From assembly GCA_013115145.1 (NCBI GenBank), contig JAAPAO010000095.1, positions 16,005 through 80,004 of the forward strand: 64,000 bases of DNA. Direction: 5' to 3'. This document shows, piece after piece, positions 13,854 through 62,585 of the stretch; positions within the stretch are counted from its first letter, which is position 1, and each line of letters opens with the position of its first letter. This DNA is from Perkinsus chesapeaki ATCC PRA-425 (taxonomy: Eukaryota; Protista; Perkinsozoa). The position numbers and the translations under genes were made by a program. The notes beneath the pieces are model-generated. The model worked only from the letters and a program-made list of their open reading frames with translations, was not told the DNA's origin and did no database searches.

Positions 13854-14232
13854 TTGGTAACAATATTCGATCTGACATGTTCTGGCTTGTGTGTGGAGCA
13901 TCTCTGCCGTGGATCTAAACTCCCACGCAATCCCTAGTCGGCGGAGTTCAGCTTATTCACGCAGCTTCATCAGCCAAAAGACGGCCTAGACGAAAATAGG
14001 GTATTCCTGTGGGAACGTATCGCAGAGGCACCATAGGCCCCTCACGTCGCACTGACTACACCAACTTGCGGAGTGCACGCCGCTTGGTCCAAGCGGCTTG
14101 GATCACGCCACTAGTGTATGCCGCCAATAGCCTGTCAGCTTTTTCCAGCCCTCTCCATAAACTAAGACCGTATTCGTCCATGAAACTTCTCATAATGCAA
14201 AGCAGTGGCCGGCATGCCCATTCAAGAACCTC

Positions 14233-18127: not shown

Positions 18128-21089
18128 ATGTCTTCATCGTCCTCGTCTGGATCAGCGCCGACCCCTCACATAGATGATGTGGAGGGGTCCCGGCCAGCTT
18201 TAGTTGTCCCTAAAGTGAAGCTTCCGCCGATTCTTCCTATATTCCAGCGCGAGGCGGTCTTGGTAACACCCACTGTGTTTCACTTTTCCCACTCAAGCCC
18301 CTCTTCCTCTTTAGGCGTTCTCCCTGGCTCTTTGTATCTTCGCTGCATGCTCTTTCTTCACTATGAACCTATCATGGGCCTATCAGCCGGATCAGAAGGG
18401 TAACAGTCAACATTAACGATGACTTCCAAAGCCATTGCTACTTTATAGGTTACGAAGTCCCGTTGGCTAATTGCCCGGCCTTCCCAGAATCCTTTACCAT
18501 AAGCCATGCTGAGGCACCATCAGGTCCAACGTGTAAATTGGAGATATTGCAAAATGGATGGAACGAGATGGTCATGTACAACTCCAGTATCTATCCCCTT
18601 CCCAGCGACACACCACTTGATAAATCTCTCAACGATTGCCGACTTCCCCAGAATGGTGAACAGAACTATGAGTGCTTCCCCCAGTACCCGTGCCATCAAG
18701 CCTGCCGTAGAGTAGATGATTCGGAGACGTATTATCTTGGTGAATGCCCCGATCCGGCATCACTACCAGATATTGGCAATGACGTGATGAAGCCCGGTAT
18801 ACCGAAATGTCAGGTCAAGCTATCGCCGAACTCTCCTTGGGAGACTCTCTTCTGTAAAGAGGTAACAACATAATGATCAAGCATGTCAAAGATTCTATCT
18901 TTCAGGTTCTTACCATGCCTTACTGTTCTAGCAAGTATGATATTACACCCTCTAACATCCTTGGTATGAGAGGCATCATCCTGGCTGGCATGCTATTAGT
19001 GGTTATATGGTTCTGTGCTGAATGGGTGTTATGGTATGTCGACCTCAACCTGCGTAAAGAGAAAGCAGAGGGTATGGCCCGAATGGAGCGTGAGCTTCCA
19101 CAGAAGAGGCTTTATCTGCGGCAGCAAGTTGAAGGGCATTGGCGGGATGAGTATAACAACGCCACGGCTAGCCCAGAGGATTCGGGCAGCCTGTCAGTGT
19201 GCATCGCCCCAGCAGTGGACGAGGAAGAGTTTGAGGGTTTACCTGATGATGAGATCAACAACTACGTCTCGAGGGATCCTGCGATGAGGTTCCAATCTGA
19301 GACCTGGAAGCGGCGGTTAACCCAGTGGAAGGCGTGCAAAGCTGCAGCCAAGCGGAGGCACAGGATTCGCCAGATATTCTACGTGGCTGGCCTCAACATC
19401 TTCTTCCTTTGGCTCCTTATCGCCACCCTCTATATCGTACTATATTACTCGCCTCAGAACATCCTTGCCACTACTAGGAATGTAGCTGATGACCTCTATG
19501 GTGAAGTATCTATATGGAACGCTCATTCATGGTTGGATATCCTTATCTTTATCGATGTCCTCCTCGATACCTTCCTATTCCTCATCGCATGCGTATTTGT
19601 CAAGTGGCCTCGTGCTCCGGTATATACTCGTCACGTCCAACAAATAGTAGCTAAGAAGAAGCAGCAAGGCAGTAGTAGCCGTGACCGTACCGGTTCATCG
19701 GAGGTCGGTGATGTCAAGTCTAGGGCTGTGTATGTTGGTGAGGACGGCATCCCGTCCCCACTAAGTGATGACCTCATTTCGGATTGCACCTCAAGCTCAG
19801 CATCTGGCTCCGAGGAGATTGTGATGAAGCAAACTCTTGCGTACGATTGTTGTCTGATGATCGCCTGCCATCTTTCTGCGATGACAGAAGAGCGGTATGA
19901 GACGTTCACTGGTACCTTGCGGGCTGCATTGATGGTGTTCCCTCCTAGCCACATCTTTGTCTGTGATAATGGTGGCGATACTCACCCCGAAGATGAGACT
20001 CAGTGGGCAACACAACAGGTTCATCCTGATATCAATTACGTGTACATACCAGAAGGCAATAAGACATTTGCATTCTACTGGGTTAATAAGTACTGGATAC
20101 CTTATCTGGCCCAAAACGGTAGGATACCTGACTTCAAGTACTCTGTTATGATTGATGATGATGTGCCTTTGCCTGCCGATCTTTATATCCCTCACGAGCA
20201 GCTGAGAGCCAATCCTAACATTAAGGCCGTGCACTTCCCTATCACAGCGACTACTCCTGATGGTAAGCCTACTATGTTGGTGAAGATGCAAGATATCGAG
20301 TATAAGATGGCAGCAGTTCACAAGCAATTCCAGGCTAAAATGGCACGAGCTCTGTCCTGCCATGGTGCCGTGTCGCTATGGGATCGTGAGGCCCTTGATG
20401 AGGTTCTCTATGAGCATGATACTGTCTTTAATGGTGAGGATATGTATATGGGGTTGACTCTTTTGAGGAAGCGTGATGAATCTACGATTATTTCCTGTGC
20501 GCAGACAATCGTACCTACCTACGCCCCAGACACTTGGCCTGTCCTTTTCCGGCAAAGAGTTAAATCGTGGGATGTTACTTCACACAAGAAGACCTTCACT
20601 TATCTCTGGGAAGTTATTAATCCTCGTTCCTTCTGCCATGGTGCATCATTGGTGTTGAAGCCATACTTCCTTCAAGAACTACTTTGTATATGTTTGGACT
20701 GGTTGCGTACCTTCCTACTATGTGGTCTACTATTCCGTGACTGGCTTGGTCTCATTCTAATGACTCTTGTTTTCACTGCTCTCCTATACGTACAAGTCTT
20801 TGTCTTTGAGGTATTCGTTCTACGTGATCGACATGACCTCAGGTCCGGTGTGATTGATTTCATCCTGTTCCCTTGGTACCGACTCCAATCGTTGCTATTT
20901 AGAATATGCGCTCTTTGCCAGAACCTATTGGTTTACAGCCATCAAAGAAAGAATGTTAAGATTGGTGTGCGTGAGCGTAAAATTCATGATATTCCTCCAA
21001 CGCCACCTCATTCCGATGTGGATTGGTTCTCGGTGTGGGAGGATGACGAGCAGGATTCTCGTCAGCAGCAACCACAGGAGAGTTCGTAG
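18128..21089 (+). CDS. Multi-pass membrane glycosyltransferase family 2 (processive beta-glycan synthase-like) with a Cys-rich extracytoplasmic domain; 3 short introns
   Basis: GT2 motifs in order: FVCDNG, EGNKTFA, MIDDDVPLP (DxD), QDIEY, SCHGAVSLW, GEDM and RQRVKSWD (QxxRW-like). Hydrophobic segments flank the catalytic domain. Introns join ORFs 18128, 18463 and 18873. Confidence 0.8.
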
Positions 21090-22542
21090 AGACAAGTATC
21101 CAGCAGCCATTTTAGAATGTCAGTCAGTTACTGATCACACAGGAAGTCCATTATGCAGTAGTTCATCATTGTCAATACATTTTACAATTTATCGTATCTC
21201 ATCATTACCGCCGAGGTTGTACAACAACCAAGACTGTTCCTTATGTTGTGTATCACTTAACAGTTCCTTCTTGTGATGTTACACAAGTATCTAGAGAGAT
21301 TACCATGTCTTGAGTTCTAACAGTTGTAACAAGAATCCGTTGACTCCGAGGCCAATACGCGACAAAGATTGATGAAACGAAGAGTGGTATGATACTACCG
21401 ACTACGAGCTTTCATGACGAGCGCTGCTAATAGTCAGAATACGGAGAATGCCATGGCGGATGAAGCTTAAGAATGGTCGAGTTTTTGATGCAACTACGTT
21501 AGTCCATCTTCCACATGCAACAATCCTCCTGCAGCGACTCCTTGGTAGTGACCGTCTCACACAAAGCGACGCGCCGGGAAGTTGCGGGGAGCGGCGCGTG
21601 ATCTAGAAGCGTCACGTCTTGGTGTCACCGTGAGACGTATTGAAAAAGGCTAATAGAAATTGCTACGGCAACTGTTGGGACCAACCGTGTCAACTACACT
21701 ATTTCAGTCTCCTCTTTTACCGACTAGCCCTTCATGTATCACATCCTAACTCTTCTACTTGCCGCGTATGCAGCTGCTCAAGACCTCTATGATGACAAGA
21801 CTATTCTTTCGGTTACTTCTGATGATTCCCTGGTTGACATCCGTACCATCCCAGATCTTCTTGCTCGTGCTGGCCAACAAGGAAACCCGAAGATCGCCAC
21901 CTTTCTCTCCAACGCTCGCATCGAGACGTTGAAGTTTGCCCAGTGTCAAATTGCTCATACTACTATTAGCTCGGTGACTAATGATGAGCTCTGCGAATAC
22001 TTGCATGAAGCTGGACGGCATCTACCAGGACTCGTGGTGACATGTACTAGAAACATCGGTGGCGAGGAGGCCAATGTTCGTGATGAGCTCCACGTTAATG
22101 ACCCACAAGCAATACGACAGAGCCAGCTGGCCCGTATGAGAATGGGTGAGGTCTGGCAACTTCTCCAGGAGTATCCTCGCAGAGAAGTTAAAGTGGCTGT
22201 TCTTGATCACGGTGTAAACTTTACTGACCCAGACCTGGCACCTTTGAGGGGATCCTCCGTAACAAGCGATGGAAAGGATATCTATGGCGGCTGGAACCTT
22301 ATAAATGACGATTCAGTCCTTACTCCAGGTGATGGTCATGGCCAGCGAGTGAGTCTCGTGCTCGCAGCGAAAGGGAATAATTCTGCCGGCATGGTTGGCG
22401 TTGCTCCTGACCATGTGCAATTGGTATCTTTACAGGTGTGCGGTATAAAAGGCTGTCCTGTTGATCTTCTAGTAAAAGCTATCGATATGGCAATAGATAT
22501 CTATGTCTCTGCGGTATTTCACACGTGATCTCAACTCCACCG
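21089..22542 (+). repeat. Segmental duplication, copy 1 (1454 bp; partner at 25582..27052)
   Basis: Manual comparison gives about 97-98% identity from GAGACAAGTAT to CTCAACTCCACCG. The only length difference is a 17-nt indel. Confidence 0.95.
21734..22542 (+). pseudogene. Truncated subtilisin (S8) copy lacking the oxyanion Asn and catalytic Ser
   Basis: Differs from 26227..27561 at 7 aa up to a 17-nt deletion, which causes a frameshift and TGA at 22526-22528. Homology ends at 22542. Confidence 0.9.
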
Positions 22543-25146: not shown

Positions 25147-25581
25147 TGAAACCAAGACTGAAAGGATGTGTTTAGCTGTTAGCGACTACGTTTGCTTTCA
25201 TTCCTAATTCCGCTTATGATCCTACCAATATCGTCATTTGTTGTTCGCATCGCCGAGTTGTCGGTCTTGATGCTGTATTCTTAGATCCGCGATACCTTGC
25301 CGTGCTGTCTTACGCGGGTCGTACTACTTATTACCATAAAAGCATTATGTTTGACATAATGTACGAAACTTCTTCTGGGTATCCAAATTCTCACGTACAA
25401 CTCCAGAATTGTGTTGTAATCTCAAGGATATTGAGCTAACGGTCAGCCTGTCAGGAAGATGCCGGAAGTATTGCCCCCATAAATCTCGTATGTCGAGTTC
25501 ATTCACTGATTGGATCAGAGGGGCTTTCAACTTGAAAGTTTCAAGCGACTTACTAGACATTTGAGCTGCTTATTAGCTGCG

Positions 25582-27052
25582 GAGACAAGTATTCAGCAGC
25601 CATTTTCGAATGTCAGTCAGTTACTGATCACACAGGAAGTCCATTATGCAGTAGTTCATCATTGTCAATACATTTTACAATTTATCGTATCTCATCATTA
25701 CCGCCGAGGTTGTACAACAACCAAGACTGTTCCTTATGTTGTGTATCACTTAACAGTTCCTTCTTGTGATGTTACACAAGTATCTAGAGAGATTACCATG
25801 TCTTGAGTTCTAACAGTTGTAACAATAACTCGTTGACTCCGAGGCCAATACGCGAGAAAGATTGATAAAACGAAGAGTGGTATGATACTACCGACTACGA
25901 GCTTTCATGACGAGCGCTGCTAATAGTCAGAATACGGAGAATGCCATGGCGGATGAAGCTTAAGAATGGTCGAGTTTTTGATGCAACTACGTTAGTCCAT
26001 CTTCGACATGCAACAATGCTCCTGCAGCGACTCCTTGGTAGTGACCGTCTCACACAAAGCGACGTGCCGGGAAGTTGCGTGGAGCGGCGCGTGACCTAGA
26101 AGCGTCACGTCTTGGTGTCACCGCGAGACGTATTGAAAAAGGCTAATAGAAATTGCTGCGGCAACTGTTGGGACCAACCGTGTCAACTACACTATTTCAG
26201 TCTCCTCTTTTACCGACTAGCCCTTCATGTATCACATCCTAACTCTTCTACTTGCCGCGTATGCAGCTGCTCAAGACCTCTATGATGACAAGACTATTCT
26301 TTCGGTTACTTCTGATGATTCCCTGGTTGACATCCGTACCATCCCAGATCTTCTTGCTCGTGCTGGCCAACAAGGAAACCCGAAGATCGCCACCTTTCTC
26401 TCCAACGCTCGCATCGAGACGTTGAAGTTTGCCCAGTGTCAAATTGCTCATACTACTATTAGCTCGGTGACTAATGATGAGCTCTGCGAGTACTTGCATG
26501 AAGCTGGACGACATCTACCAGAACTCGTGGTGACATGCACTAGAAACATCGCTGGTGAGGTGGCCAATGTTCGTGATGAGCTCCATGTTAATGACCCACA
26601 AGCAATACGACAGAGCCAGCTGGTCCGTATGAGAATGGGTGAGGTCTGGCAACTTCTCCAGGAGTATCCTCGCAGAGAAGTTAAAGTGGCTGTTCTTGAT
26701 CACGGTGTAAACTTTACTGACCCAGACCTGGCACCTTTGAGGGGATCCTCCGTAACAAGCGATGGAAAGGTTATCTCTGGCGGCTGGAACCTTATAAATG
26801 ACGATTCAGTCCTTACCCCAGGTGATGGTCATGGCCAGCGAGTGAGTCTCGTGCTCGCAGCGAAAGGGAATAATTCTGCCGGCATGGTTGGCGTTGCTCC
26901 AGACCATGTGCAATTGGTATCTTTACAAGTGTGCGGTAAGAAAGGCTGCCCCGTTGATCTTCTAGTGAAAGCTATCGATATGGCAATAGATATCAGAGTT
27001 GGTGTGATATCTATGTCTCTGCGGTATTTCACACGTGATCTCAACTCCACCG
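25582..27052 (+). repeat. Segmental duplication, copy 2 (1471 bp)
   Basis: Partner of 21089..22542. Includes about 645 bp upstream of the gene plus the 5' 60% of the intact subtilisin. Confidence 0.95.
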
Positions 27053-28166: not shown

Positions 28167-31100
28167 TCAACCCACTGACTGCACAGAAACTTTATCTGCT
28201 GCACCATATCCAAGGGTACGATCACACTCTTGATCCATAGCAGGGAGGGAGTTAGTTGATCGAGCCCGCGGTCGCATGGGGACTTCTGCGCTACCAGCCA
28301 GATTTGCTGGCATCAAGCCAGCGTTGGCCTCAGTATTCTGCCTCGCCTCCTCATTGCCATCGTTGGCCTCAGTATTCTGCCTCGCCTCCTCATTGCCAGC
28401 GTTGGCATCAGTATTCGGGTGCTCATTGGATGATTGAGAGCCTGGTGGGGGAGGATGATTATCTAGCGGCCCCAACAAATCGGGATATGGTGGTTGATCA
28501 GTCCTGTGGGCTCCGTAGCCAGTAAGATCAGCCCCACCAACGGCTATAAGAGTCTCGGGAGATCTCAATATCTTAACAAGGCAGTTGTACATAGTAAATT
28601 CTCGGCGCATATCACCATACACCTGAGCAATCGCCACACCTCCAATGAGATCGAGTAGCTCCTGAGGGTTGGGGATCTCCGAATAGATGACCTTCTGGGA
28701 CGAGTCTTGGAACATCACACGAATAAACTGCCCAATAGCGTAGATAATTGTGACGTAGAAGCCCAAAATACCGAGAGACAGGAAACCACCAACTTCATTA
28801 CCACCAAAAACTTTGTCCAACATCAGAGTAAAACTAACACCATCAAAGCCGGAGTTTTCCGACCCAGAGCACACCACGCCTCCTCCTCCTCCAGGGCACG
28901 AGTCATATTGCGTACTGCCCATAGAAGCGAAAGGGTTTCCCTGTGAGCCACTGATGGAAGCCTCTAGGGAATACCACATGGTCGGGTCACTGAGGTAGCT
29001 ATTCCACGTGGCAGTGTTAGTGGTATCGATATGGATCACAGATGGACCGAAGTTAGGGAATAAAACTCGACTTGCCGGGTTTTCTACGACCGTACTTATG
29101 CTCTTTCTGAAATCCTCGAAATCGAGTGGGTAAGATCCCATCGAACAGTCGTCACATAAATTGCCGCTCGTTGGTACAACACTGGCATCACAGCCGCATA
29201 AGCCCATATCAAACTCGCCAGAGGAGGTGTAACCAACGCTATTAGAGCGCGACCAAGATACTGACAACTTCATTTCAACCCTAAGATTCTCAGCCAGACT
29301 ATCAGCACCCAATAAGTCAACGATTGACTTAACCTTATTGGGGCTCGCTTGTATCATTGAGGAGCTACCAAGTGGAAAGGTGATGTTTTGAACAGCAGCT
29401 TCGGTACTAACGCCCGGCTGAGTCTGTAAAAACTTCGTTGCCGCCGAGCCTGTAACAAGCCTAGAGTGCAGTATCGGGGCAGAATAGAGATCCTGGAATA
29501 TATAATAGGGAGACTCGCAGTCCCCTGCGCAGGTCTGGATATTCAACGACACCTTCATGGAAGCTTCGGTCACATAAGCATTCTTCGAGAACGGCGAAAA
29601 AGTGGAGAATATCATAATCGGTAAGACAATGATGATAACGAGGATGATTGTTAGGCCACAACCCGACATGCATTTCTCCCACCAGAACTTCTTGCGCTCT
29701 GCTGGCCAGTTCTCTCGGCGGTCATCCATCTCTTGCGACACATCCCAGAAGTTGTTGTGTGCGTCCTCCAAAAGGAAGTATTGTGAGAGGTCCAAAGACG
29801 TCGGCGTTACAGTCCAGTCGACTGTTGTTCGGACTTCCTGTAGGAAGGGGATGACTTTATAAATAGAGAAGGCGTAACCAGCTACAGTGTTGCGAATCGC
29901 ATTCCAGGACTTTGCCGGCCTCAGCGAATCATACCATATGCGAGGCACACCATCACGCAGCTGCTTTAGGGACACCACCAAATACTGTACGAATACGAGA
30001 TAGTATATCGACATGGCCCAGTTTTGAACAACTGGGGTGAAGGCTGAGGCATCGTTATTCGGTACCAGATTACACAGTATTGTAATATGAAGGGCGAGTA
30101 TTATAGCGATTAAAAGTATAACACGAAAGATGAACCACCCCATAGCAGTTCGAGTGGTCTTTCTCTTCACAGAGTCTCGGCACAGGTCTATAGATGTATC
30201 GTTCAGATTGTCCCCCGCAGTGAAAGGAGTATCTACGTGAGACAAATCAACATCGATAGTGCCCGTATCACTCATGCAGCTTGCACGGTAATAGGCTCGG
30301 TCGAGCACGATCAACACCAAGTGGCTTATCATTAAGACCGCGAGTGATGCCGAGAACTTGTTGGATTTGAGCGCACCGAGAACATCCTCACCGGTATCAC
30401 CCGACATCTGGTGGTAAGTCAAAATACACCATACCCATAGAAATAGAGCCAACAGAAACATCGGAATGTAGTAGTCACAGCCAACCTTGTGCGCAGCAAA
30501 TGGATCTATATAATCGAAGATCTTAGCCAGCCAGTCGGTTCGGCGTGACCCCGCAATCGCGATGGGCAGAGCCTCTTGTTCATAGTGAGTGAGCCTCAGA
30601 GTCTCGTTATTAGCATACACTGCCTGGGCCAGCCAACGCATTCGCCGATAACCATCGATAAGCTTACTAACTCCAACTAGATCACTAGACCAAACGGGAA
30701 CACATCGTCCTTGAACGTCTTCGTCACACATGTAACGGGAAGTCGCGTATCGACTTAACTCAGCATAGCCCACTGAGGTCAAAGGGACACCGTCAAGGTC
30801 GACGAAGGAGCCTATCGAGGTGGATGTTGCACTTATGTAGTCCGAGTCACTAACTGACGATGAGCCCAAAGACTGGAACACTGTAGTGGTACGCCGCATA
30901 GGGACATCGTCCCCGCAGGTTAAAAGGCCGGCCCCCTCGCTAGTGTCCACTGGTGCAGGGTTCATCTCATGCTCGACATCCTCCAAGGAGTCGGGGTCGA
31001 ATACACCCATGTAATCACGTGGGACCAAGATGGCTGAAGATTCCTTATGGGGATCGGCGACCTCAACAAAGTCCCAGAGTCCACACAGCTGCAGGGACCA

Positions 31101-34100
31101 TTTATGAAAATAAAGAGCCAGCAGCAATAGGGCATCAGCCCAGACATAGCCGAATATGCCTGAACTTCGCTGTCTCGGTAAGGCAGACTCACCGGTGACC
31201 TTAGCGAAACCAATCCAAACATCCCAACCGACATCCACATACTTGGGACAAGAGAAGATGGTAGACATTCGAGGGTTGCCATAGCCTCCTTCGAAGGTAA
31301 CAGGGGAAGTAGCACTGCTACCAAACCGCCAAAAGATACCAAAGTTGCTATCTGTCGAGGCTGCTCCACAGAGCAAGGGCGTCTGATAGGCCATGCGGAC
31401 AATGAACCACAACGCTGTAGCAATGATAAGGACTTCCCAAACCCACCGGGGCTGGAGCGGCCATCTTGGAGTGAACCAGAGAATGAACATAACACGCACG
31501 GCATCGAAGATAGAGGTGGCCACGAGGAAATCCAAGGCAATCATCAGGTACACTGGGAAAACCGTCGAGGAAGCAAGATACTTCATAGCGACCTCGAGTA
31601 GGCCACCCGCTCTGGTGTGCAATGTCTGAGGGTCTGCTGCCCTATAGTCTTCTAGAAACCTCATGCTGTTGGTGCCGTTCTCGAGAGTCTGCTCTAACCA
31701 CTGCCACGCACTCGCGAGGATACCAGGGGGCTCATCTTCGTAGGATTCTTTTTGCCGTTCCGAGTAGTTTAGCAGCACCTAGGACTCCTGCATTTTTCCT
31801 AAACCGAAACGACGCACATCAGACAATAGCGCTTCAGCTTCGTGTGGATGTTTATGGCAAACTTCCAGTGCCTGATGCGACTCCATATCGCTGAAGCCGT
31901 CCATACGCAAATGCTCGACTAGCATGGTCTCAACTTCCCGGAAGCCGGTCTTGTCGTCGTCACGATTCACCTCATCAAGATTATCACGGCTAACGGACAT
32001 GCGGTTCTTTGCAGCCAGTCTAGTCGTCACAGTGACATCAAACCCTTTCTGGTTGACGTCCACGAATGTGTCAACCTTCTGCCGAACCCTTTGCAGTTTG
32101 GCCGCTAGGCCGCCGATGGTGCAGGTAGCCTGCCGACTCAACACGTAGAGGTTGGCGTTGAACTCATTGATGAAGCGTCTGGCCTTCGCCTTCCGTGACT
32201 GGACTTCCTCAATAAACTGGTTTTCGATAACATCATAGCCGACACTATTGTATATCCTAAGTTGTATTAATGCGGCACACAAAGTCAACAGCACAGGACC
32301 GTAACCGAAGGGGAACGGCAATGTCACCCCACCGTGGGACTTTCCCAAACCCAGCACTTGAAAGAATATCTGTAACCACGTGAAGACATCATGCTCAACA
32401 AGCGCTCCACAACGGTTTCGGTTATGATGGTAGACATCCTGTAGGTTCACGCACGTAGCACAGCTAATGTACGGAACACGAGCTGTGCCGTCAGTGACAG
32501 TAATGGGGTTGCAAGCATCCTGCCATACCCTACAAGGAATGAAGGGGATTTGGTAGAAGAGCTGAAGCCCGAAAGCCGTCGCCGCCGAGCACATGGTGAT
32601 AACCATCATATGCCGCGGCGGCATTGCCGCCGTGCAGCTTTGTAGTCAAAGTGAAACCGAAGGAGGCCCACAAACATACATAGCATAACATCGGTTATCA
32701 CATTGGTCTCCATAACATATGCGAAAGAGCTGAGGAAGGTTAATAACCAGACCACATAAATCCACAGCCGCATAGCCAAGATCGACCACTTCCCGGGACT
32801 TCTGGCGCCGGACATGGCGGTTTTATCAAGTGAGAGAACAGCGTTCTGACGGATCAGTCTCGAGGTGGCGGCCGACGCTAAGTTACCGCTCAATCCGACG
32901 CGGATATTTCGCATAAGCATGACAATGATCCACAGGCTGGTTAGCTCCCAAATGAGTGCAGCGCCAGGTATGGCCTTCATTGTCATGATGTTGCTCGGTG
33001 TAGAACCGCCATAGAGTTGCAGCTCTGTGTAACCCTCGAGACTACCAGGTGCTACAAGGAATCTTTGCCAGTCATCTTGGCAAGATGCCGTATACGCACC
33101 ATCAGCTTGAATCCACGGCGAACCACAAAACCATCCTCCGTCGAAGCGTGCCGGCTGCTCCGTCCACCAAGGGGGGTACCACAGCCGCAATATCAGTTGC
33201 ACGATGATACAAACAAGTACAAGGCTGACTATCCACAGCCTCCGTATTCTGAGGCTAGCTCCTCCCTTCATCGCTGACATTATGCATGCCGCCATAATGT
33301 AGTATATGTAGCTGTAGATGTTACTGCGAGCACCAGCTGCTAGCATTAGCGTTGAGGCTGCTAGAGGAGGAGTGTAAAACGCCAATGAGCTTGAGGAAAT
33401 CTCCAAGGGTTTTTGTCCCCATGGAGAGAGACCATGCCGAGCGGTGTAGTCGATGTTTCTTTGCACCACACATAGGATGAGGATGCCAATATTCCGACCA
33501 ACGCTCGCACCAGTCCACGAGAAGCCCAACCACTGCTCCGTATCGGAGGCAATGGAATCTTCTGTGAAGGAAAAGCGAAAGACGTATTGCAGGATAAAGA
33601 AGATAGACACCGCCAATGACACTACAACGTTCAGCGTACCCCAGCCTCGACCGAGGAACAATAATATGGCGGCTACGATCATTAGGACAACACTGGCGAG
33701 AGACGTCTCAAAGACGGAAAAGAGAAATATACAGTACATTACAACAGAGGGAAGGATCCTCGCTGTGTATACTATAAGGGATTCAAATACTCTCATGCCC
33801 GTTGACCGCTCATCTTTAGACAAGTCGACATCGCCACCGGTCGTCTGGTCAAAGTCATCCAGAACTAGCAACGAGGATGCGAACCGGACCATTCTCATAC
33901 AGACAACCGCAGAGAAGGCAGTCAACGCTGTCTTCCAAATGCCCTCTGCGGATTTATTAATACCGAGTTCAGAATATAAAGGATATGATAGGTTACGAGT
34001 TAGACTGTCGTATATACTCGGATAAAGAGCGACACATCGCCACCCGACAACAGCAATACAAAAATAAGCAAGGGCATAGTTCACTACAATAATACCACGA

Positions 34101-37100
34101 TACCTTTGTGAGTTCTTGAACAGAAGCTGGTATATTGCGATTTGTACAACAAAGATAGCGAGCATCGCAATAGAAAATACGTCTACGGGCTTCGTCAGCG
34201 CAACCCAGAGCGTCCAAAAGAGAGCAATGTACACTGCTATGCGAGAAATAACAGTCCAGTGCTCCCTCAGGAAAGCACCAATAGGTGTGCTAGCCCGATG
34301 CAGATCATGAGAAGGCGGTAGCCGATCCGGCAAGATGGCAACGAGAAAGACGCAAAGGTGGGCGATCGCAGGAACGAAGACGTTCGGGAATGGATCCAAT
34401 GAGAAGTATGAGTAATCCCAGATAGCATACTCCATAGATACCGCACAGCAAACCACTGATGATACTATTAAACCGAGAGTGACAACACGCTTTATGAAAC
34501 CCTCGGGTTGCACTATCAGAACAAGAGCGAAAAAGAGGTAGATGAGAATATAAACGTTGCTTTCGTTGGTGACACCGAGGACGGTCATCACAATTATCAG
34601 AACGCATACCACAGCAAAGTCGGCATGGGTTAGCACACGGCGAACTGTCTTCCACAAGTACTGGGCAGTTCGGCCGCGCATCCATCTTGGCAGAACAGAC
34701 TCATCGCTTGAATTATCGACCTGCTTCGGAGACGTACCGAACTGCCATCGCCAAATAGCGGCAAGAACGCAAGTAAATAGGAGTTGGAGGCTGAGCGCCA
34801 AGAACCTCCATCCAACTTGAGCGTTATCTCCAAAGTTATAGAAATGGATACCGATGCTCTTTAGGAAGAACGTTTGGCTATCAGTGGTGACTTTCTGGGC
34901 AAAGGTCCACGGAATACTGCATACTATACTTAATAGAGCAAGGAACCCTGCATAGCATACAATACACCCATATACCGTTCTTGTACCGACTAAAGCTGGC
35001 AGCAACAAGAGGGCGCAGCCACCAATCAACAGTGGCGTTGCCAAGGTACTAGGGACGACAACTGCCCAGAGAAGCAGTATGAAAGGAGCTCCAACACTAA
35101 GAGCGATCGTATCGAGGAATGCAGCCCATGCACGAGAAATCCAGGAACGCTTCTTCGCCTTCGGTGCGACATTTCCAGCCAAGCCAGCTTCGGCAGCGGA
35201 CAATGCATCCCCATCCTGAATGGTCGAAGGAGACATCTTCCGCGCTCGGTAGGTGAGCCCTGAGGCTGAATGCTCAAGGGCCGCGGATGTCGCAGGAGTC
35301 GGAAATGAGCTGGAGGCCGGTTCTGCCTGAGATGCCTCGAACGACGCATGCCTCAGCGTTGGTAGGAGATACCACTGCTTGGTGAAAGGCTCGTAGGGTT
35401 GGATAAACCAAGGCAGAAGGAAGGCCTGCATGGCCAAGCCGGCTGCGGAGAAGAGCATAACGGTGAAGTTCATTTGGAAGCCAGCAGGGTTCTCTAACTT
35501 ATACTCCTTGACCATTGGTGAACCAACCATCTGCGGCATCCACAGGGTTCTGTTCATAGCATCGGCAACTCCACCAGGTAAACTTAAAGTATACCTGAGG
35601 AGCTCCTTTTCATAGCAGATCTGAGAATGCATTATTAGCGTACATTATAAAGCCCTGTATCCATGTGTATATAAGGATTAACTTCTTGAGCTTAATTTTG
35701 GAGATGCTGCAGTGAGGGCTATAGCGGAACTGAAAAGGATACAGGATATCGTTAGGCGATCAGTGTGCGGCGGTGACTGGCCAGTGAAGTTTACTGTATT
35801 GGCTCACAGTTTGATAATGTACACGGGTACTGGATGACATTGTATGTGAATAGCTTACGTTGGGTATAGTCCAGGTGAGTAGTCCAAAGAATAAGTATAG
35901 CACATATGGTAACGTAAGTAGACAAGGTGACAGCAGGATCTGCCACAATATAAGGAAGTACACGATCAGAACTTGTGCCCGAGACAATAAAACAGCTGCA
36001 CTGAAAAGATATACCAATTGGAGACTTTCAGCAAGGCTTGACCAGCTACAAATCGTAGCGTGGAAAGTGGCCAATCTATTTCCCAGCAATTTTGCTGTAT
36101 GCAGTTGCGAGCAGACGCCGTGAAACCGTCGTGTGTTCAAGCAATTTCCAAAGATATACTCACCAATGGCGGCACACTAGCAATGGGTAGTGATAGTTTT
36201 TGAAAGGCAACAGGATAAATGTCAAAGCAATCGGGAAGTAGGAGAGCGAGGACAAGACCACCGACAACATACCTGACACAGGAAATAACTACACACGAGG
36301 TAAAGTGCTAACGAAAAAAGGCTGAGGATTAGACGCTATCATCCTACCATCCAACTTGAGATGATCCAAAGTAAACACTAGCATATGTTGTAGAGTAAAG
36401 GCCACCTTGTAATACGAGTAAAATCTGATTAAGTGATAGTGTGGTAAAGTAAACACTTGGCCTCTTACAATAGGAATACAGGCGACATATGAAATAACAG
36501 GTAATGGGCCAATAGACAGACGTGGCCAAGCTCTATATGCTAACAGGCTTAATGATATTAGGAGGTATCTGACAGGGAATGAGATAAGGAGGCCTCGACT
36601 AGTACAAGTTGAGTAACCTACCCAATGCCAGGCACAGTGGAGCCTTCAACACACGAAACAGCGACAACCATCGCAAAGATCACCAATCCCAGGAGCGGTG
36701 GGATTGGGGACCGCAACGGCAGCATCTATCGTTATCAAACAGATCACAAAATCAATCCTATAAGGGCCAGATCCCAAAGCCGCTGCGTCTAAGGGAATTA
36801 TTGTGTACTGTAATTCTTAACCCTATCCCTGATAGAAGCACCTTGATACCAAATGCGGTGAGCATTTTCGACAACGTCCAAGCAAGGTTAAACTTCAACC
36901 GTATGGTTTTAGCAGCCTTAATAGGCTTATTGAACAACAGTAATGTTTACTCACTTACACCAACACCTAATGTTGCCTTAGGAAGCAGTAAAAGTAACAC
37001 AGTATGACAGTATTTAGTGTACGTAGGGGTTAACGTTAAGTTAGATGCCTTCAAGAGCCTTCTCTATGCCCTTTGCAGCTCTCACTACGAGGTTCCTGTC

Positions 37101-37831: not shown

Positions 37832-38949
37832 CTACATTATGATCTACATTTCCAACGGGCCATGTACAGTCAATGTCCAAGGCTTACGGTAAGGCTTGGA
37901 CATTGACTGTACCTGGCCGCGGTAAGGCCCTTACCGCGATGGCCATGTCGCCCCACTGCAATAGAGGTGCCACTTCCCGGTTGATTTTGCCAATCTGCGC
38001 CACAGTCTCAACAGATGCTTTATTGACAATGCTCAGAGGGGTGCTGGCGTCCCATGGCCCTTCCAGCCCCACAGTGTGCCACATCAGTCTAAGAGCCTCG
38101 ACCAGTGTATCTGCGCATCCATCACATTCACACCTGAGTAACCTACGGCGCCCCACCTTCGTTAGCAAACTTCAGCCCCCTGGCCGCGGCCTTTGCATTC
38201 GGCCTGTACCGACAGATAGTGGCGAAAACCTCAGCGGAGATTTCCTCTGTGGATGACAGAGACTTGACATTCAAAGTGTTGACGGCATTATCTAACACAG
38301 CAAGTCTAATCCAACAGGCAAGAGGCACCCACCATTGAGCGCAAGCATGAAAAGGACTCTTCCGATCCTATCGATACGACCATTATCCAGCAGCCAGTGG
38401 CCCAGCTCTGGTTCTCTAATAAGCACCTTCACCGAAGGGGCGTCTGTGAACGCGGTGAGGAGCAGCTCCAACAGGAAAACCTGAGCTGTATCATTCCAAT
38501 ATAAGGAGAACTTACGAGCCTTACCGTCGCATCTGTAAGAGGGTCTTTATTAGCAACTTTATCTTCAATTTTCTGAACCACAGAGTCGACGCAATCCACG
38601 AGAGACCGATAGAAGGACTCGTGACTGGCAAAGAGTAACGGCGTGGATAAGATCGAAGCTGTTGATGCACTCACCTGTCGGATGTCCATAGAGACTCTAC
38701 AACCTTCAGTGCATGCAGGACCACTGTATCATCGCCGTTACGTAGACACATGTACCGTGAAAATAATGGCAGGTACCTGATGAAGAAGGGTGACATTTCT
38801 GATGGAAAAACGAGAGAAGACTCAAATAGACGCAATAACATTCCCGGCCGTGTTTCCGAAATATAGCGAGCCACATCTGCCTTCTTCGTGTAGTATAGGC
38901 ACCCCCTCGGCCATATTCGCATCTTATTTTTCTTCCTCGGGCGTGGCAC
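37832..38949 (-). CDS. Hypothetical helical (ARM-like) protein; multi-exon
   Basis: ORFs 38671..38949, 38429..38689, 38143..38328 and 37884..38168 are separated by short GT-AG introns. No family recognised. Confidence 0.5.
37858..37938. repeat. 61-bp near-perfect palindrome (37858..37918) abutting a perfect 21-bp palindrome (37918..37938)
   Basis: 28 of 30 base pairs match around centre 37888, and 10 of 10 match around centre 37928. Confidence 0.95.
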
Positions 38950-39169: not shown

Positions 39170-42100
39170 GATCCACACTGAACTTCTCTGCACCGCACCA
39201 TCATCAATTAGAGATCCTCATGACTCAAAGGTACCCCCCGCCGAGAAAACAGAAATCCAAGCCATAAATCGAGCACTAGTTATTCACTTACGACCGTAGC
39301 TCTTCAGTGTCCATAGTGGCATCTTTAACACCCTTACACCACCGATCCAAGCCAGCACAACACCAGTCCAAATCCCTCCGCTTTGGGCTCTCCAAGCCTC
39401 CTAGGACTCTCATGGCCCCAATCTACCAAATACATCACTTCGATTCGAGCCCAGAGCTCCTACCTGGGATGCCCTATAATAATCGTCGACATAAGGCAGC
39501 AGATAATTGCATACATCAACCTAGCGAACGTTCGCTGGTCTGAAAAGTCTCCCGTCAACACAGCCTACTCTGTATCGCTCCGCTGCATCATTAACAATAT
39601 CCCCACAGATATCCTGGAGCTTGGGGGCTAGGGGCAGTAGCATGGAGAGGAGATGAGCCACGGATAGGGCTGATGGAGACTCCTCTACTTCCTCAAGGAC
39701 TTGAGGGAACTGAGCGACAGACAGCCTTTCAAAAGCACGAAGGCCAACAATGACTTGCCATTTCCTGTTTTGCGATATTCTCCAGTGAGATAAGGAACTC
39801 CGGTATGTCCGCTAGTTCCTTAGTGAACTGCGGGAATCGTATAAGTAGCTGCACTAAGGAGGCTGAAGCAGCATGCCTAACCTGTACAGGACGACAAGAC
39901 GGATGAAATGACATCCATGCAATACAGACCAGCAGGAAACCTCACAAGAACGAGAGCTAGTGATACTGGCAGCCCCCTTCGACAAGTTCCAGCAAGGAAG
40001 TGGTACCAGAACATATACCGATTGTTCATCCCAAGGCTCCTTTAAAGATTCCGACGGAAGGTCTAGCTTTGCGCCCGGCCAAATGTTCCTTTATCATCCG
40101 GTATAGGGAACCTATAATAGAGCACACTACTTACATTAATATTGTTATGCGATGCTGAGACAGCAAATCTAACATGGACTTGTCTATGCCCTATCCAGAC
40201 ACTACTAACATCTTCCTCCTTCTCTATTATATTACCCAATGTACCTACCACTACGCCTTACTCCTCACCCTCTCAACTACACCACCCTTACGTATAGCCA
40301 ATTGCCTTTGACCACCGTTATTAGAGTCCGACAATACCAGCAATTCCTGTACAGTATAGCCTGGCCTGCCTGGCTCCTCCCCGTGATGGTACAGCACCTA
40401 CCCCACCGTCCCCCATACCACCTCATCAAGACTGCGGCCTACCGGATCGTATCTTCCTCCAGCGTCCCGCTTGAGCTCGTGGCCTTCAAAGTCAAACCTT
40501 CGGCCTTCAAAAGTCTCATCCTCCGGTCGAGGCATATCCTCATCCTCATTAACCGGCTCCATCCACTTTTGCTTATCAATCTCCAACTCGTCCAACTCCA
40601 GACGATTGCCATACCTACCACCTCCGTCCTCCCCCGATACCCCCAGGCTCCTCCCCTACCCTAAATCAACCTCGCCTTCATACATGTCCTCCCCTTCAGT
40701 GACCGTATCTCCTGCTTTGTTGCTGCTATCTGCCCCATCCGAGGGGCCTTCAGCCTCTAACTTCTTTCGGCCACGTTCGCGAAGGAACTCGATATTCGAT
40801 GCGCTAAACATACGCTGGACCTGCGAAGTAGAATGGCTGAGATAGTATTAGTAAAGGCCTAGCCATATCGATACAGCATGCTCCATATGCCCTTGAGTTG
40901 ATTAGACAGTTCCATATGCATTTTTGAGTTAGAACAACTCAAAAGTGTTCGCAATGAACCCTGCAATGAGATTAGCGTCCTATTAACTAATCCTCTAAAA
41001 ATCACTTTATTAGTAAAACTCCGCAAATGCCCGTATATGGAAGAGGGTATATCCAAACTACCGCGCGCCACGAAATCCCTACGTCCTCCTCATGATTACC
41101 TCAGCCATAGTCTCCTCTCTCTCTTCCTTACTCATGTTCAACACAGCCGTAGTGTTGTTGTTGTTGTTGTTGTTGTCTCCATTACCCTCCTTCACCTTCC
41201 CCGCAGCCTTTCTCTGGGCTAAAGGCACATTTGCCTCAGCCAGCTTCTTAGATCTCCATGCCCTCAGTTTAGGCTTAGGAAAGCCCTTGGCAGCTGATGA
41301 CGGATGAGCACGAGGTGGAGCAACCACTGTATTCAGCTAAACGGCAATGATGGCGATATTACTCCATCCCCATCTACCTCGGGATTCCTCTCCACTACAC
41401 GATCGTTCATCACACGAGCAAGCGGCACATCAACCGAGGCTAGCTCAGCCTCTTGCTGGGCCTTAACATTACGACTCTCATCTGAACAACAACGTGGCAT
41501 ACGAGCGGCGTTAAACAAACCAGCAGCCACACCAGAAAGTCTCATGGTGAATCATGATTGGCTTTCGCCCTCCCGATAGATAGCCCACTGAAATCCAGTG
41601 ACTGGATAATACATAAGGAGTTCAACTGGCCTGCAGTCACTGTACTGAGGCTCGTTAGGTTCTTATACGAGACAAGGTTAATGATGATGAGTACTAGAGG
41701 ATGTGATAGGATAAAGAATTGCTCAATGGACGCCTACTACACATCCTAAGCCCTACTTGGTGGAATACATCTATTACATCAACAACACTTCACCTACACC
41801 ACAATAGACACTGACGATAGTCATTTAGGCGCCCCACAGAAATAACAGGTTGCTCGGGAATAAAACAGTGGTCTTAATACAAAGATGCACTGCCATTGGA
41901 CTGCACATACGAAGTCATGCCGCAAGAAAGAAGGCCTTCCCTTCGGGCCCGTCTCATGTCTCGCTATAACTGCCCGATTGACAGGGCTCCTTTCCTCTCG
42001 CCAATGGCCATTCCCCCTTCTAATACCTTCCTTCATTATCCCATCCTCCTCGGCAAATGTAACCCTCTTATCCTCCTTGCCAACTCTAACCACACTAGCA

Positions 42101-61694: not shown

Positions 61695-62585
61695 TTACAT
61701 GGGTCTATAATTTGGCAAGTTTAGGCCATTTGAAGTCGATAAAGCGGAACTACAGGATACCGAAACCTCTCTACAGCACTAAACGGATATTGGACATTAG
61801 GGCAATCGCTTCTCAATGCGGTGAAGGCGAGCCCGGGAAGCCTGCCCGCTACACGCGCAGGCTTCCCTTCCTTCCAATCGCTTAAATGTCCAAGCTTCAT
61901 GCTGACGCCACTCAAGAAGCCTCTCATACAGTCGCTATTAGCGACTCGCTAATGCACGATCGTGTTCATCCGGGTAAATTGGCGAGATCTAGTTTGGTGT
62001 TTTGGCGGTCGGTGAGACTCGTACTATAGCTGTATGCAGGGAGTGAGTAAAGCAAGAGACTCGTACTAAAGCCTCAAAGCAAGAGAAGCCGGTGGTATCG
62101 TGCACACTTTGAAGGAATGTCATCCGTGCACAGTCCATATCAAGCAAGTTGGGGGATCACCGATGGCTCACTGCACTGTTGCTACGAAACCCACCGTCGA
62201 CCTGGTCGGAGACTTCGACTCGAAGCTGATGAGTCACGATGGTGCAGGACTTGCCTATTAGTAGTGATGGCAAGTTACTCCAGGGTAACACGACAGTCGA
62301 GCACATCCAGGAAAAAGTGCTATGTGGGTACAAGTAAGCCACAATCTAGGCAATAATCAATAGAATGTGAGCATTACTGGTACCACCATGGGGACAAGAC
62401 CTAAGCCCCGCAGACCAGCTGCCTATGGAGAGAAGGGCTGGACGGGTTGTTGCCAGTTTTGTTCTTAACATTCTCCATAAGATAGACTTTCGTGACTGGT
62501 GATAATGATGAGCCTTCTTACAACAACGAAGCAGACTTATAGTGAAAGCATTAAGCGCTGCCGTTAGGGCATTACAGTAATGACA

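Follow-up and report, generated by a model that had tools for sequence, protein, structure and literature searches.

The assembled Piezo gene of Perkinsus chesapeaki is, judging by its sequence, a recently inactivated allele that carries two lesions: a 14-bp insertion that shifts the reading frame, and an in-frame nonsense codon further downstream. We consider it probable that a hairpin-forming transposon of the hAT type, which duplicates 8 bp on insertion, entered the long Piezo exon and excised again, that the 14-bp insertion is the scar it left, and that this scar and the nonsense codon have together inactivated the allele in the recent past. The locus lies in what we call the window, the whole 64-kb stretch of DNA that was analysed (C3448:16005–80004), which comes from a 41.7-Mb draft assembly of 3,544 contigs.

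A Piezo gene divided among three open reading frames

Three long Piezo ORFs follow one another on the minus strand of the window (35632–32606, 32624–31779 and 31778–28167, of 1008, 281 and 1203 codons, respectively). The gene, its parts and its lesions are as follows, with positions given in the window.

28167–35632 plus 5′ exons, minus strand: Piezo gene, from the ORFs and the homologue alignment
36523–36701, minus strand: N-terminal Piezo exons, from weak matches to residues 32–73 of orthologue P0001 in two frames
32606–35632, minus strand: upstream part of the giant Piezo exon, the 1008-codon ORF with the blade helices, from homologue matches
32611–32624, minus strand: 14 surplus nt, in the register of the original prediction and from homologue spacing
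31779–32645, minus strand: middle part of the Piezo exon, in the shifted frame (listed ORF 32624–31779, 281 codons; open from 32645)
31779–31781, minus strand: in-frame TAG, the second inactivating lesion, which replaces the invariant Asp of QESDV (4/4 orthologues)
28167–31778, minus strand: downstream part of the Piezo exon, 1203 codons, with THU, THU9/anchor, cap and pore module, from Pfam and homologues

The 1203-codon ORF scores 139.9 bits against PF24874 (cut-off 28), with E values of 1e-40 for the THU9/anchor and 1e-32 for the cap, and 114.4 bits against PF12166 (cut-off 26.9). Its residues 458–1118 are 80% identical and 89% similar to the P. marinus protein Pmar_PMAR027031, with 2 gap positions in 662; the P. 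marinus entry is a partial model that ends before the lesion site. The middle part of the exon contains the YQIP helix, the beam region and a UBA-like stretch. Four environmental Piezo orthologues (P0001–P0004, 2,448–2,686 aa) are collinear with all three ORF pieces at 24–35% identity, the pieces having been searched and aligned separately and, in one alignment, with an X placed at the TAG. The search of representative proteins with the 1008-aa ORF returned two distant environmental orthologues and nothing else, the 281-aa ORF gave no match in the homologous-protein search, and the sole return of the metagenome scan was a more distant Piezo (L006). The assembly contains the locus once, with neither a further copy nor a haplotig.

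The gene seems to be built of a handful of small exons at the 5′ end and, after them, one giant exon of ∼7.4 kb. Between 35633 and 36701 on the minus strand there are several short GT..AG intervals, taken as introns by eye, with the donors GTAGGT, GTGAGT and GTAAGC, and the predicted proteins of P0001–P0004 are single products, matching the window's single 7.4-kb exon. At 28200–28400 (minus strand), in the tail beyond the conserved ..PDLLGPLDN, there is a short tandem peptide repeat (..GNEEARQNTEAN.. twice) that has no counterpart in the aligned part of the P. marinus model.

The assembly also holds a second, very divergent Piezo-family gene (C3153:205–6474, L032/L033), with an uninterrupted frame of 2,089 codons and with THU9/anchor and cap domains above threshold. 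The C-terminal pieces of this gene and of the window gene are 23–37% identical. The genus is supported by a spliced-leader motif of the dinoflagellate/Perkinsus type, which occurs 16 times in the genome, against 0 in the reversed control, and by the 80% identity of the C-terminal Piezo piece to the P. marinus protein.

Exactly 14 nt are surplus at a double palindrome

The 1008- and 281-codon ORFs overlap but are read in different frames, the downstream one at +2 relative to the upstream one, and the switch between them is confined to the interval from 32648, the last stop of the downstream frame, to 32608, the stop of the upstream frame. The upstream ORF has the C-terminus ..RRQCRRGI*, its terminating TGA arising from the frameshift. 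The original prediction placed the change of frame at a double palindrome, and both palindromes are indeed exact: the first has 7-nt arms at 32610–32616 and 32618–32624, and the second has 8-nt arms at 32616–32623 and 32625–32632. Perfect inverted repeats with arms of at least 8 nt and a spacer of at most 3 nt are found at 7 loci in the 64-kb window, against 3.8 expected, and the chance of such an 8-arm palindrome falling within the 40-nt zone of the frame change is ∼0.6%.

The size of the surplus was read from the homologues, to which the end of the upstream frame and the start of the downstream frame were aligned independently. The upstream frame aligns through ..KAARR, with its Arg-Arg at a conserved basic pair, and the downstream frame aligns from HMMVIT.., within a helix-loop-helix segment across which P0001–P0004 and the distant homologue L006 show zero gaps. 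The two frames of the window tile these five homologues only when exactly 14 nt are removed, which leaves an 8-bp site and fuses ..KAARR to HMMVIT... The 14 nt may be taken in any of six equivalent registers inside 32610–32631 (32611–32624 and five others). The surplus of exactly 14 nt that had been predicted is therefore borne out, as is the continuous reading AARRHMM, whose junction is gapless in all five homologues. It had also been proposed that the insert was templated by the neighbouring sequence, as an inverted copy plus a direct re-copy, and this accounts for all 14 nt. The 14-nt surplus is thus confirmed as a real observation, beyond chance.

Two other candidates for these 14 nt were rejected. 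A 14-nt intron would have GT..AG ends in 0/6 registers, and a repeated element or motif was ruled out, since the 17-nt palindrome has a single occurrence in the genome.

The insertion has the form of a recurrent 22-nt unit

Both palindromes are contained in a simple arrangement in which an 8-bp site, T, has become T(1–7) + revcomp(T) + T(2–8), that is, 22 bp with a net gain of 14 bp. At the Piezo site T is ATGCCGCC on the plus strand and GGCGGCAT in the coding sense (codons Arg-Arg-His), and the scar in the coding sense reads GGCGGCA + ATGCCGCC + GCGGCAT. T(1–7) at 32610–32616 and T(2–8) at 32625–32631 bracket the inverted copy, such that the 8-bp duplication is kept on both sides. The palindrome centres are at 32617 (G), the complement of T8 (C), and at 32624 (T), the complement of T1 (A).

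We scanned the 64-kb window and 150 kb of four other contigs for perfect units of this form. The window holds four, none of them assigned to a strand.

32610–32631, unstranded: perfect 22-nt scar in Piezo, T = ATGCCGCC (plus-strand reading), from the sequence geometry
14081–14102, unstranded: perfect 22-nt scar, T = CGCTTGGA, outside long ORFs, from the scar scan
25524–25545, unstranded: perfect 22-nt scar, T = CTTTCAAG, outside long ORFs, from the scar scan
61931–61952, unstranded: perfect 22-nt scar, T = GTCGCTAA, outside long ORFs, from the scar scan

The four other contigs gave 16 more perfect units, 14 of which are not simple repeats. On theoretical grounds 2.4e-4 such units are expected per 64 kb, and the Markov-shuffled controls yielded them in 0/30 cases. 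There are 18 scar sites in the 214 kb, with mutually unrelated 8-mers, giving a density of ∼1 per 12 kb and, by extrapolation, ∼3,500 scars genome-wide. Only one of the 18 lies in a long open frame, against the 14–19% of bases that such frames make up, a depletion that is not significant in this small sample. Near-perfect 22-nt scars were seen in addition at 41586, 62205 and 62569, all of them outside long ORFs.

The scar at 25524 is also found, with one mismatch, in a 96%-identical copy of its surroundings (window 25340–25561 against C3390:735–956). Since the scar is common to both copies, it must be older than the duplication or allelic split that separated them, and the presence of one scar in two diverged copies, one of which has mutated, indicates that the scars are replicated genomic sequence. 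Empty sites were not found for the window's three other scars, two of these being single-copy and the second copy of the third being scarred as well. Close to this scar there is a 99%-identical local repeat of 149 nt (25582–25730 against 21089–21237, 4.5 kb apart). Shortly before the 5′ region of Piezo, at 37851–37955, there are also long, near-perfect palindromes, which the scar-forming process may have left as footprints with longer arms.

Signs of hAT elements in the genome

The target-site consensus of hAT elements is nTnnnnAn. Over the 18 scars, T2 or A7 is present in 19/36 cases, against a background of 26% (p = 5.7e-4). The Piezo site itself agrees at one of the two positions, with T2 present and a C rather than an A at position 7. 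The chemistry of hAT excision also bears on the geometry of the unit. In hAT footprints, palindromic insertions have at their centre the complement of the base to which the transposon end was joined (PMC5873905), and with hAT, Transib and MULE elements the hairpins form on the flanking DNA (PMC5499845).

Sequences related to hAT transposases are present in the assembly. The hAT dimerisation domain, PF05699, was matched 11 times above the cut-off, within open frames of up to 532 codons, compared with 0 matches in 14 control genomes. In one 530-aa ORF (C616:1018–2610, L008) the domain lies at residues 452–493 and is accompanied by a weak match to DUF4371. The hAT transposase-like ORFs of 413–532 codons are found on very short contigs (C616, C18, C767 and C3474), which are perhaps collapsed repeats. 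A search for resident elements with terminal inverted repeats (14 nt, at most 2 mismatches) and an 8-bp duplication gave 0 candidates in 240 kb; this sample is small, and non-autonomous elements may be rare.

A proposed origin of the Piezo scar

On the model that we favour, the element would have inserted at GGCGGCAT, where the codons are Arg-Arg-His, and would have duplicated this 8-mer. On excision, each flank would close into a hairpin, offset by one base, whose tip carries the complement of the base bordering the element, and the hairpins would then be opened away from the tip to give overhangs. The overhangs would be complementary, since both derive from one duplicated 8-mer, and their joining would yield site(1–7) + inverted site + site(2–8), 22 bp replacing 8 bp. 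The final joining step may use microhomology-mediated end joining. Whatever the two opening positions, this single product would result as long as the lengths they add total at least 8, which would explain the stereotypy of the scars. As the net gain would always be 14 bp, a scar of this kind in coding DNA would always shift the frame.

That an hAT element made the scar, and that its flanks were joined by this route, is what we infer from the geometry, the target bias and the transposase-like ORFs. The 8-mer that would have stood at the Piezo site before insertion is deduced from the frame and from the length of the homologues. Here the model can be checked against something other than itself: because the gapless homologues demand the loss of 14 nt at the Arg-Arg/His junction, the empty site that the model would predict is tested independently. 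The protein spacing owes nothing to the scar model, and it therefore lends support to the view that the scars record transposition in the past.

More tentatively, and with slightly less than even confidence, we suggest that Perkinsus repairs hAT-type breaks by one near-invariant route, in which hairpin overhangs are annealed over the full inverted 8-mer. The Piezo scar would then mark a recent hit-and-run event that knocked out one allele in a parasite that is polyploid and was cultured clonally. If this is true, every excision leaves a +14-bp scar and the genome constitutes a countable record of thousands of transpositions, with the Piezo scar as a case in which the inferred empty site is verified independently by protein homology.

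Origins of the insertion without a transposon

A templated insertion might also have arisen as a single event, without any transposon, at a spontaneous break or stalled fork, through end joining by polymerase theta or template switching during replication. The nascent strand would switch to the complementary strand, copy ∼9 nt and return at a 5-nt microhomology. We regard such an origin as unlikely, although an inverted copy of the adjacent 9 nt together with a direct re-copy of 5 nt does explain all 14 nt, and no resident transposon is seen near the Piezo site or in the 240 kb. Template switches vary in arm length, whereas the fixed 7+8+7 geometry recurs at 18 unrelated sequences in 214 kb, the Piezo site among them, each time with an 8-bp site gaining 14 bp, and this fixed geometry argues for an enzyme-defined break. 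Moreover, the palindrome centres complement the outer bases of the site, and the T2/A7 bias is hAT-like. The original prediction had attributed the insert to polymerase theta or template switching, or else to an amplification chimera. Of this, the templated character of the insert holds good, and polymerase theta may fit the last joining step of the model set out above, but a one-off template switch or chimera does not account for the same geometry at so many unrelated sites or for their target bias.

It is less probable still that the 14 nt, and perhaps the TAG too, are an artefact of sequencing, amplification or assembly and are missing from the DNA of the organism. Such an explanation would suit a draft assembly of 3,544 contigs, and would suit two lesions lying close together in an otherwise well-conserved gene. 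The usual indel errors, however, are homopolymer slips and not exact 14-nt inverted-plus-direct units, and the architecture recurs roughly every 12 kb and shows a target bias of a biological kind. The 25524 scar, present in two diverged copies of which one is mutated, points the same way. The lesion is probably carried by the organism itself and not confined to the assembly.

A second lesion and the loss of the pore

The 281- and 1203-codon ORFs share a frame and are divided by the TAG alone, and the tblastn alignment runs through 31779–31781 uninterrupted. This codon, of which the original prediction made no mention, sits 830 nt downstream of the frameshift and ahead of the pore. It had been claimed that the insertion frameshifts Piezo and results in a pore-less product, and this is what the frames imply: the upstream frame ends at residue 1008, a stop that precedes the beam, anchor, cap and pore. 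Apart from the frameshift and the TAG, ∼2,490 codons are open. Taken with the 80% identity of the pore module to that of P. marinus, this suggests that the inactivation was recent.

The earlier claim had left one escape, namely that truncation would be avoided if a 110-nt GT-AG intron (32671–32562) removed the lesion. The truncation stands, but the escape does not, because the TAG would truncate the protein even if the frameshift were bypassed, and the intron itself has an atypical donor and would cost 32 aligned residues. All frame-restoring GT/GC..AG intervals were listed. A functional Piezo, with the lesion bypassed by this intron, by one of 38 nt (32675–32638) or by ribosomal −1 frameshifting in the 40-nt overlap, is very improbable: the 110- and 38-nt intervals are indeed bounded by GT..AG and, being 2 mod 3 in length, restore the frame, and the GC-rich palindrome could fold in RNA, but removing the two intervals costs 32 and 8 residues, respectively, where none of the five homologues has a gap, their donors (GTGGGC and GTTTGT) are unlike those at the likely 5′ introns recognised by eye, the overlap is without an X XXY YYZ slippery site and frameshifting there would add 5 residues, and the downstream TAG is still in frame.

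Implications

Gene predictors are likely to mask the Piezo lesion with an invented intron. The locus should be labelled as a frameshifted and nonsense allele or as a pseudogene, and not as a spliced Piezo. One of the two Piezo-family genes appears to be dispensable in the sequenced culture, or to be carried there as a null allele.

Amongst the scars, that in Piezo is especially informative, for it lies in a conserved coding exon, where homologue spacing confirms that 8 bp gained exactly 14. Cut-and-paste elements appear to have recently struck conserved coding exons in Perkinsus chesapeaki.

Comparison with known systems

The window gene resembles Piezo channels (Pfam PF24874, PF12166 and PF23188) in its anchor and cap domains, its overall length of ∼2,500 residues and its collinearity with the orthologues. 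It differs from them in carrying a +14 frameshift and, further on, a nonsense codon, which interrupt it. A frame continuous through the blades, beam, anchor and pore is not found in it, which makes it a broken member of the family.

The scar shares with the inserts made by template switching or polymerase theta the copying of adjacent sequence, first inverted and then direct, with microhomology at the point of return. Those inserts, unlike the scar, are of variable length and have neither a fixed 8-bp register nor a target preference. There is a chemical likeness to the P nucleotides of V(D)J joining, where hairpin-capped ends opened off-centre give palindromic additions, as in the chemistry of hAT and Transib elements. 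V(D)J coding joints, in contrast, are without a target-site duplication and have short P tracts, and the resemblance does not imply a RAG-like system.

For hAT footprints, the comparison set was drawn from maize, snapdragon Tam3 and Hermes, with studies in yeast, Arabidopsis and Candida. As in the footprints of Ac/Ds, Tam3 and Hermes, the 8-bp duplication is retained at both flanks of the Perkinsus scar (PMC5873905, PMC5499845). As in footprints of the Ac/Ds type, the insert consists of palindromic copies of its flanks, and the host gene can be frameshifted (PMC5873905, PMC5499845). A limited literature search found no precedent for a nearly uniform 22-bp hAT excision product. Known hAT footprints are heterogeneous, with deletions, palindromic additions of a few nt and many variants at a single site, whereas the Perkinsus scars take one fixed form, a full inverted 8-mer with a gain of 14 bp, which recurs genome-wide and nearly unchanged.
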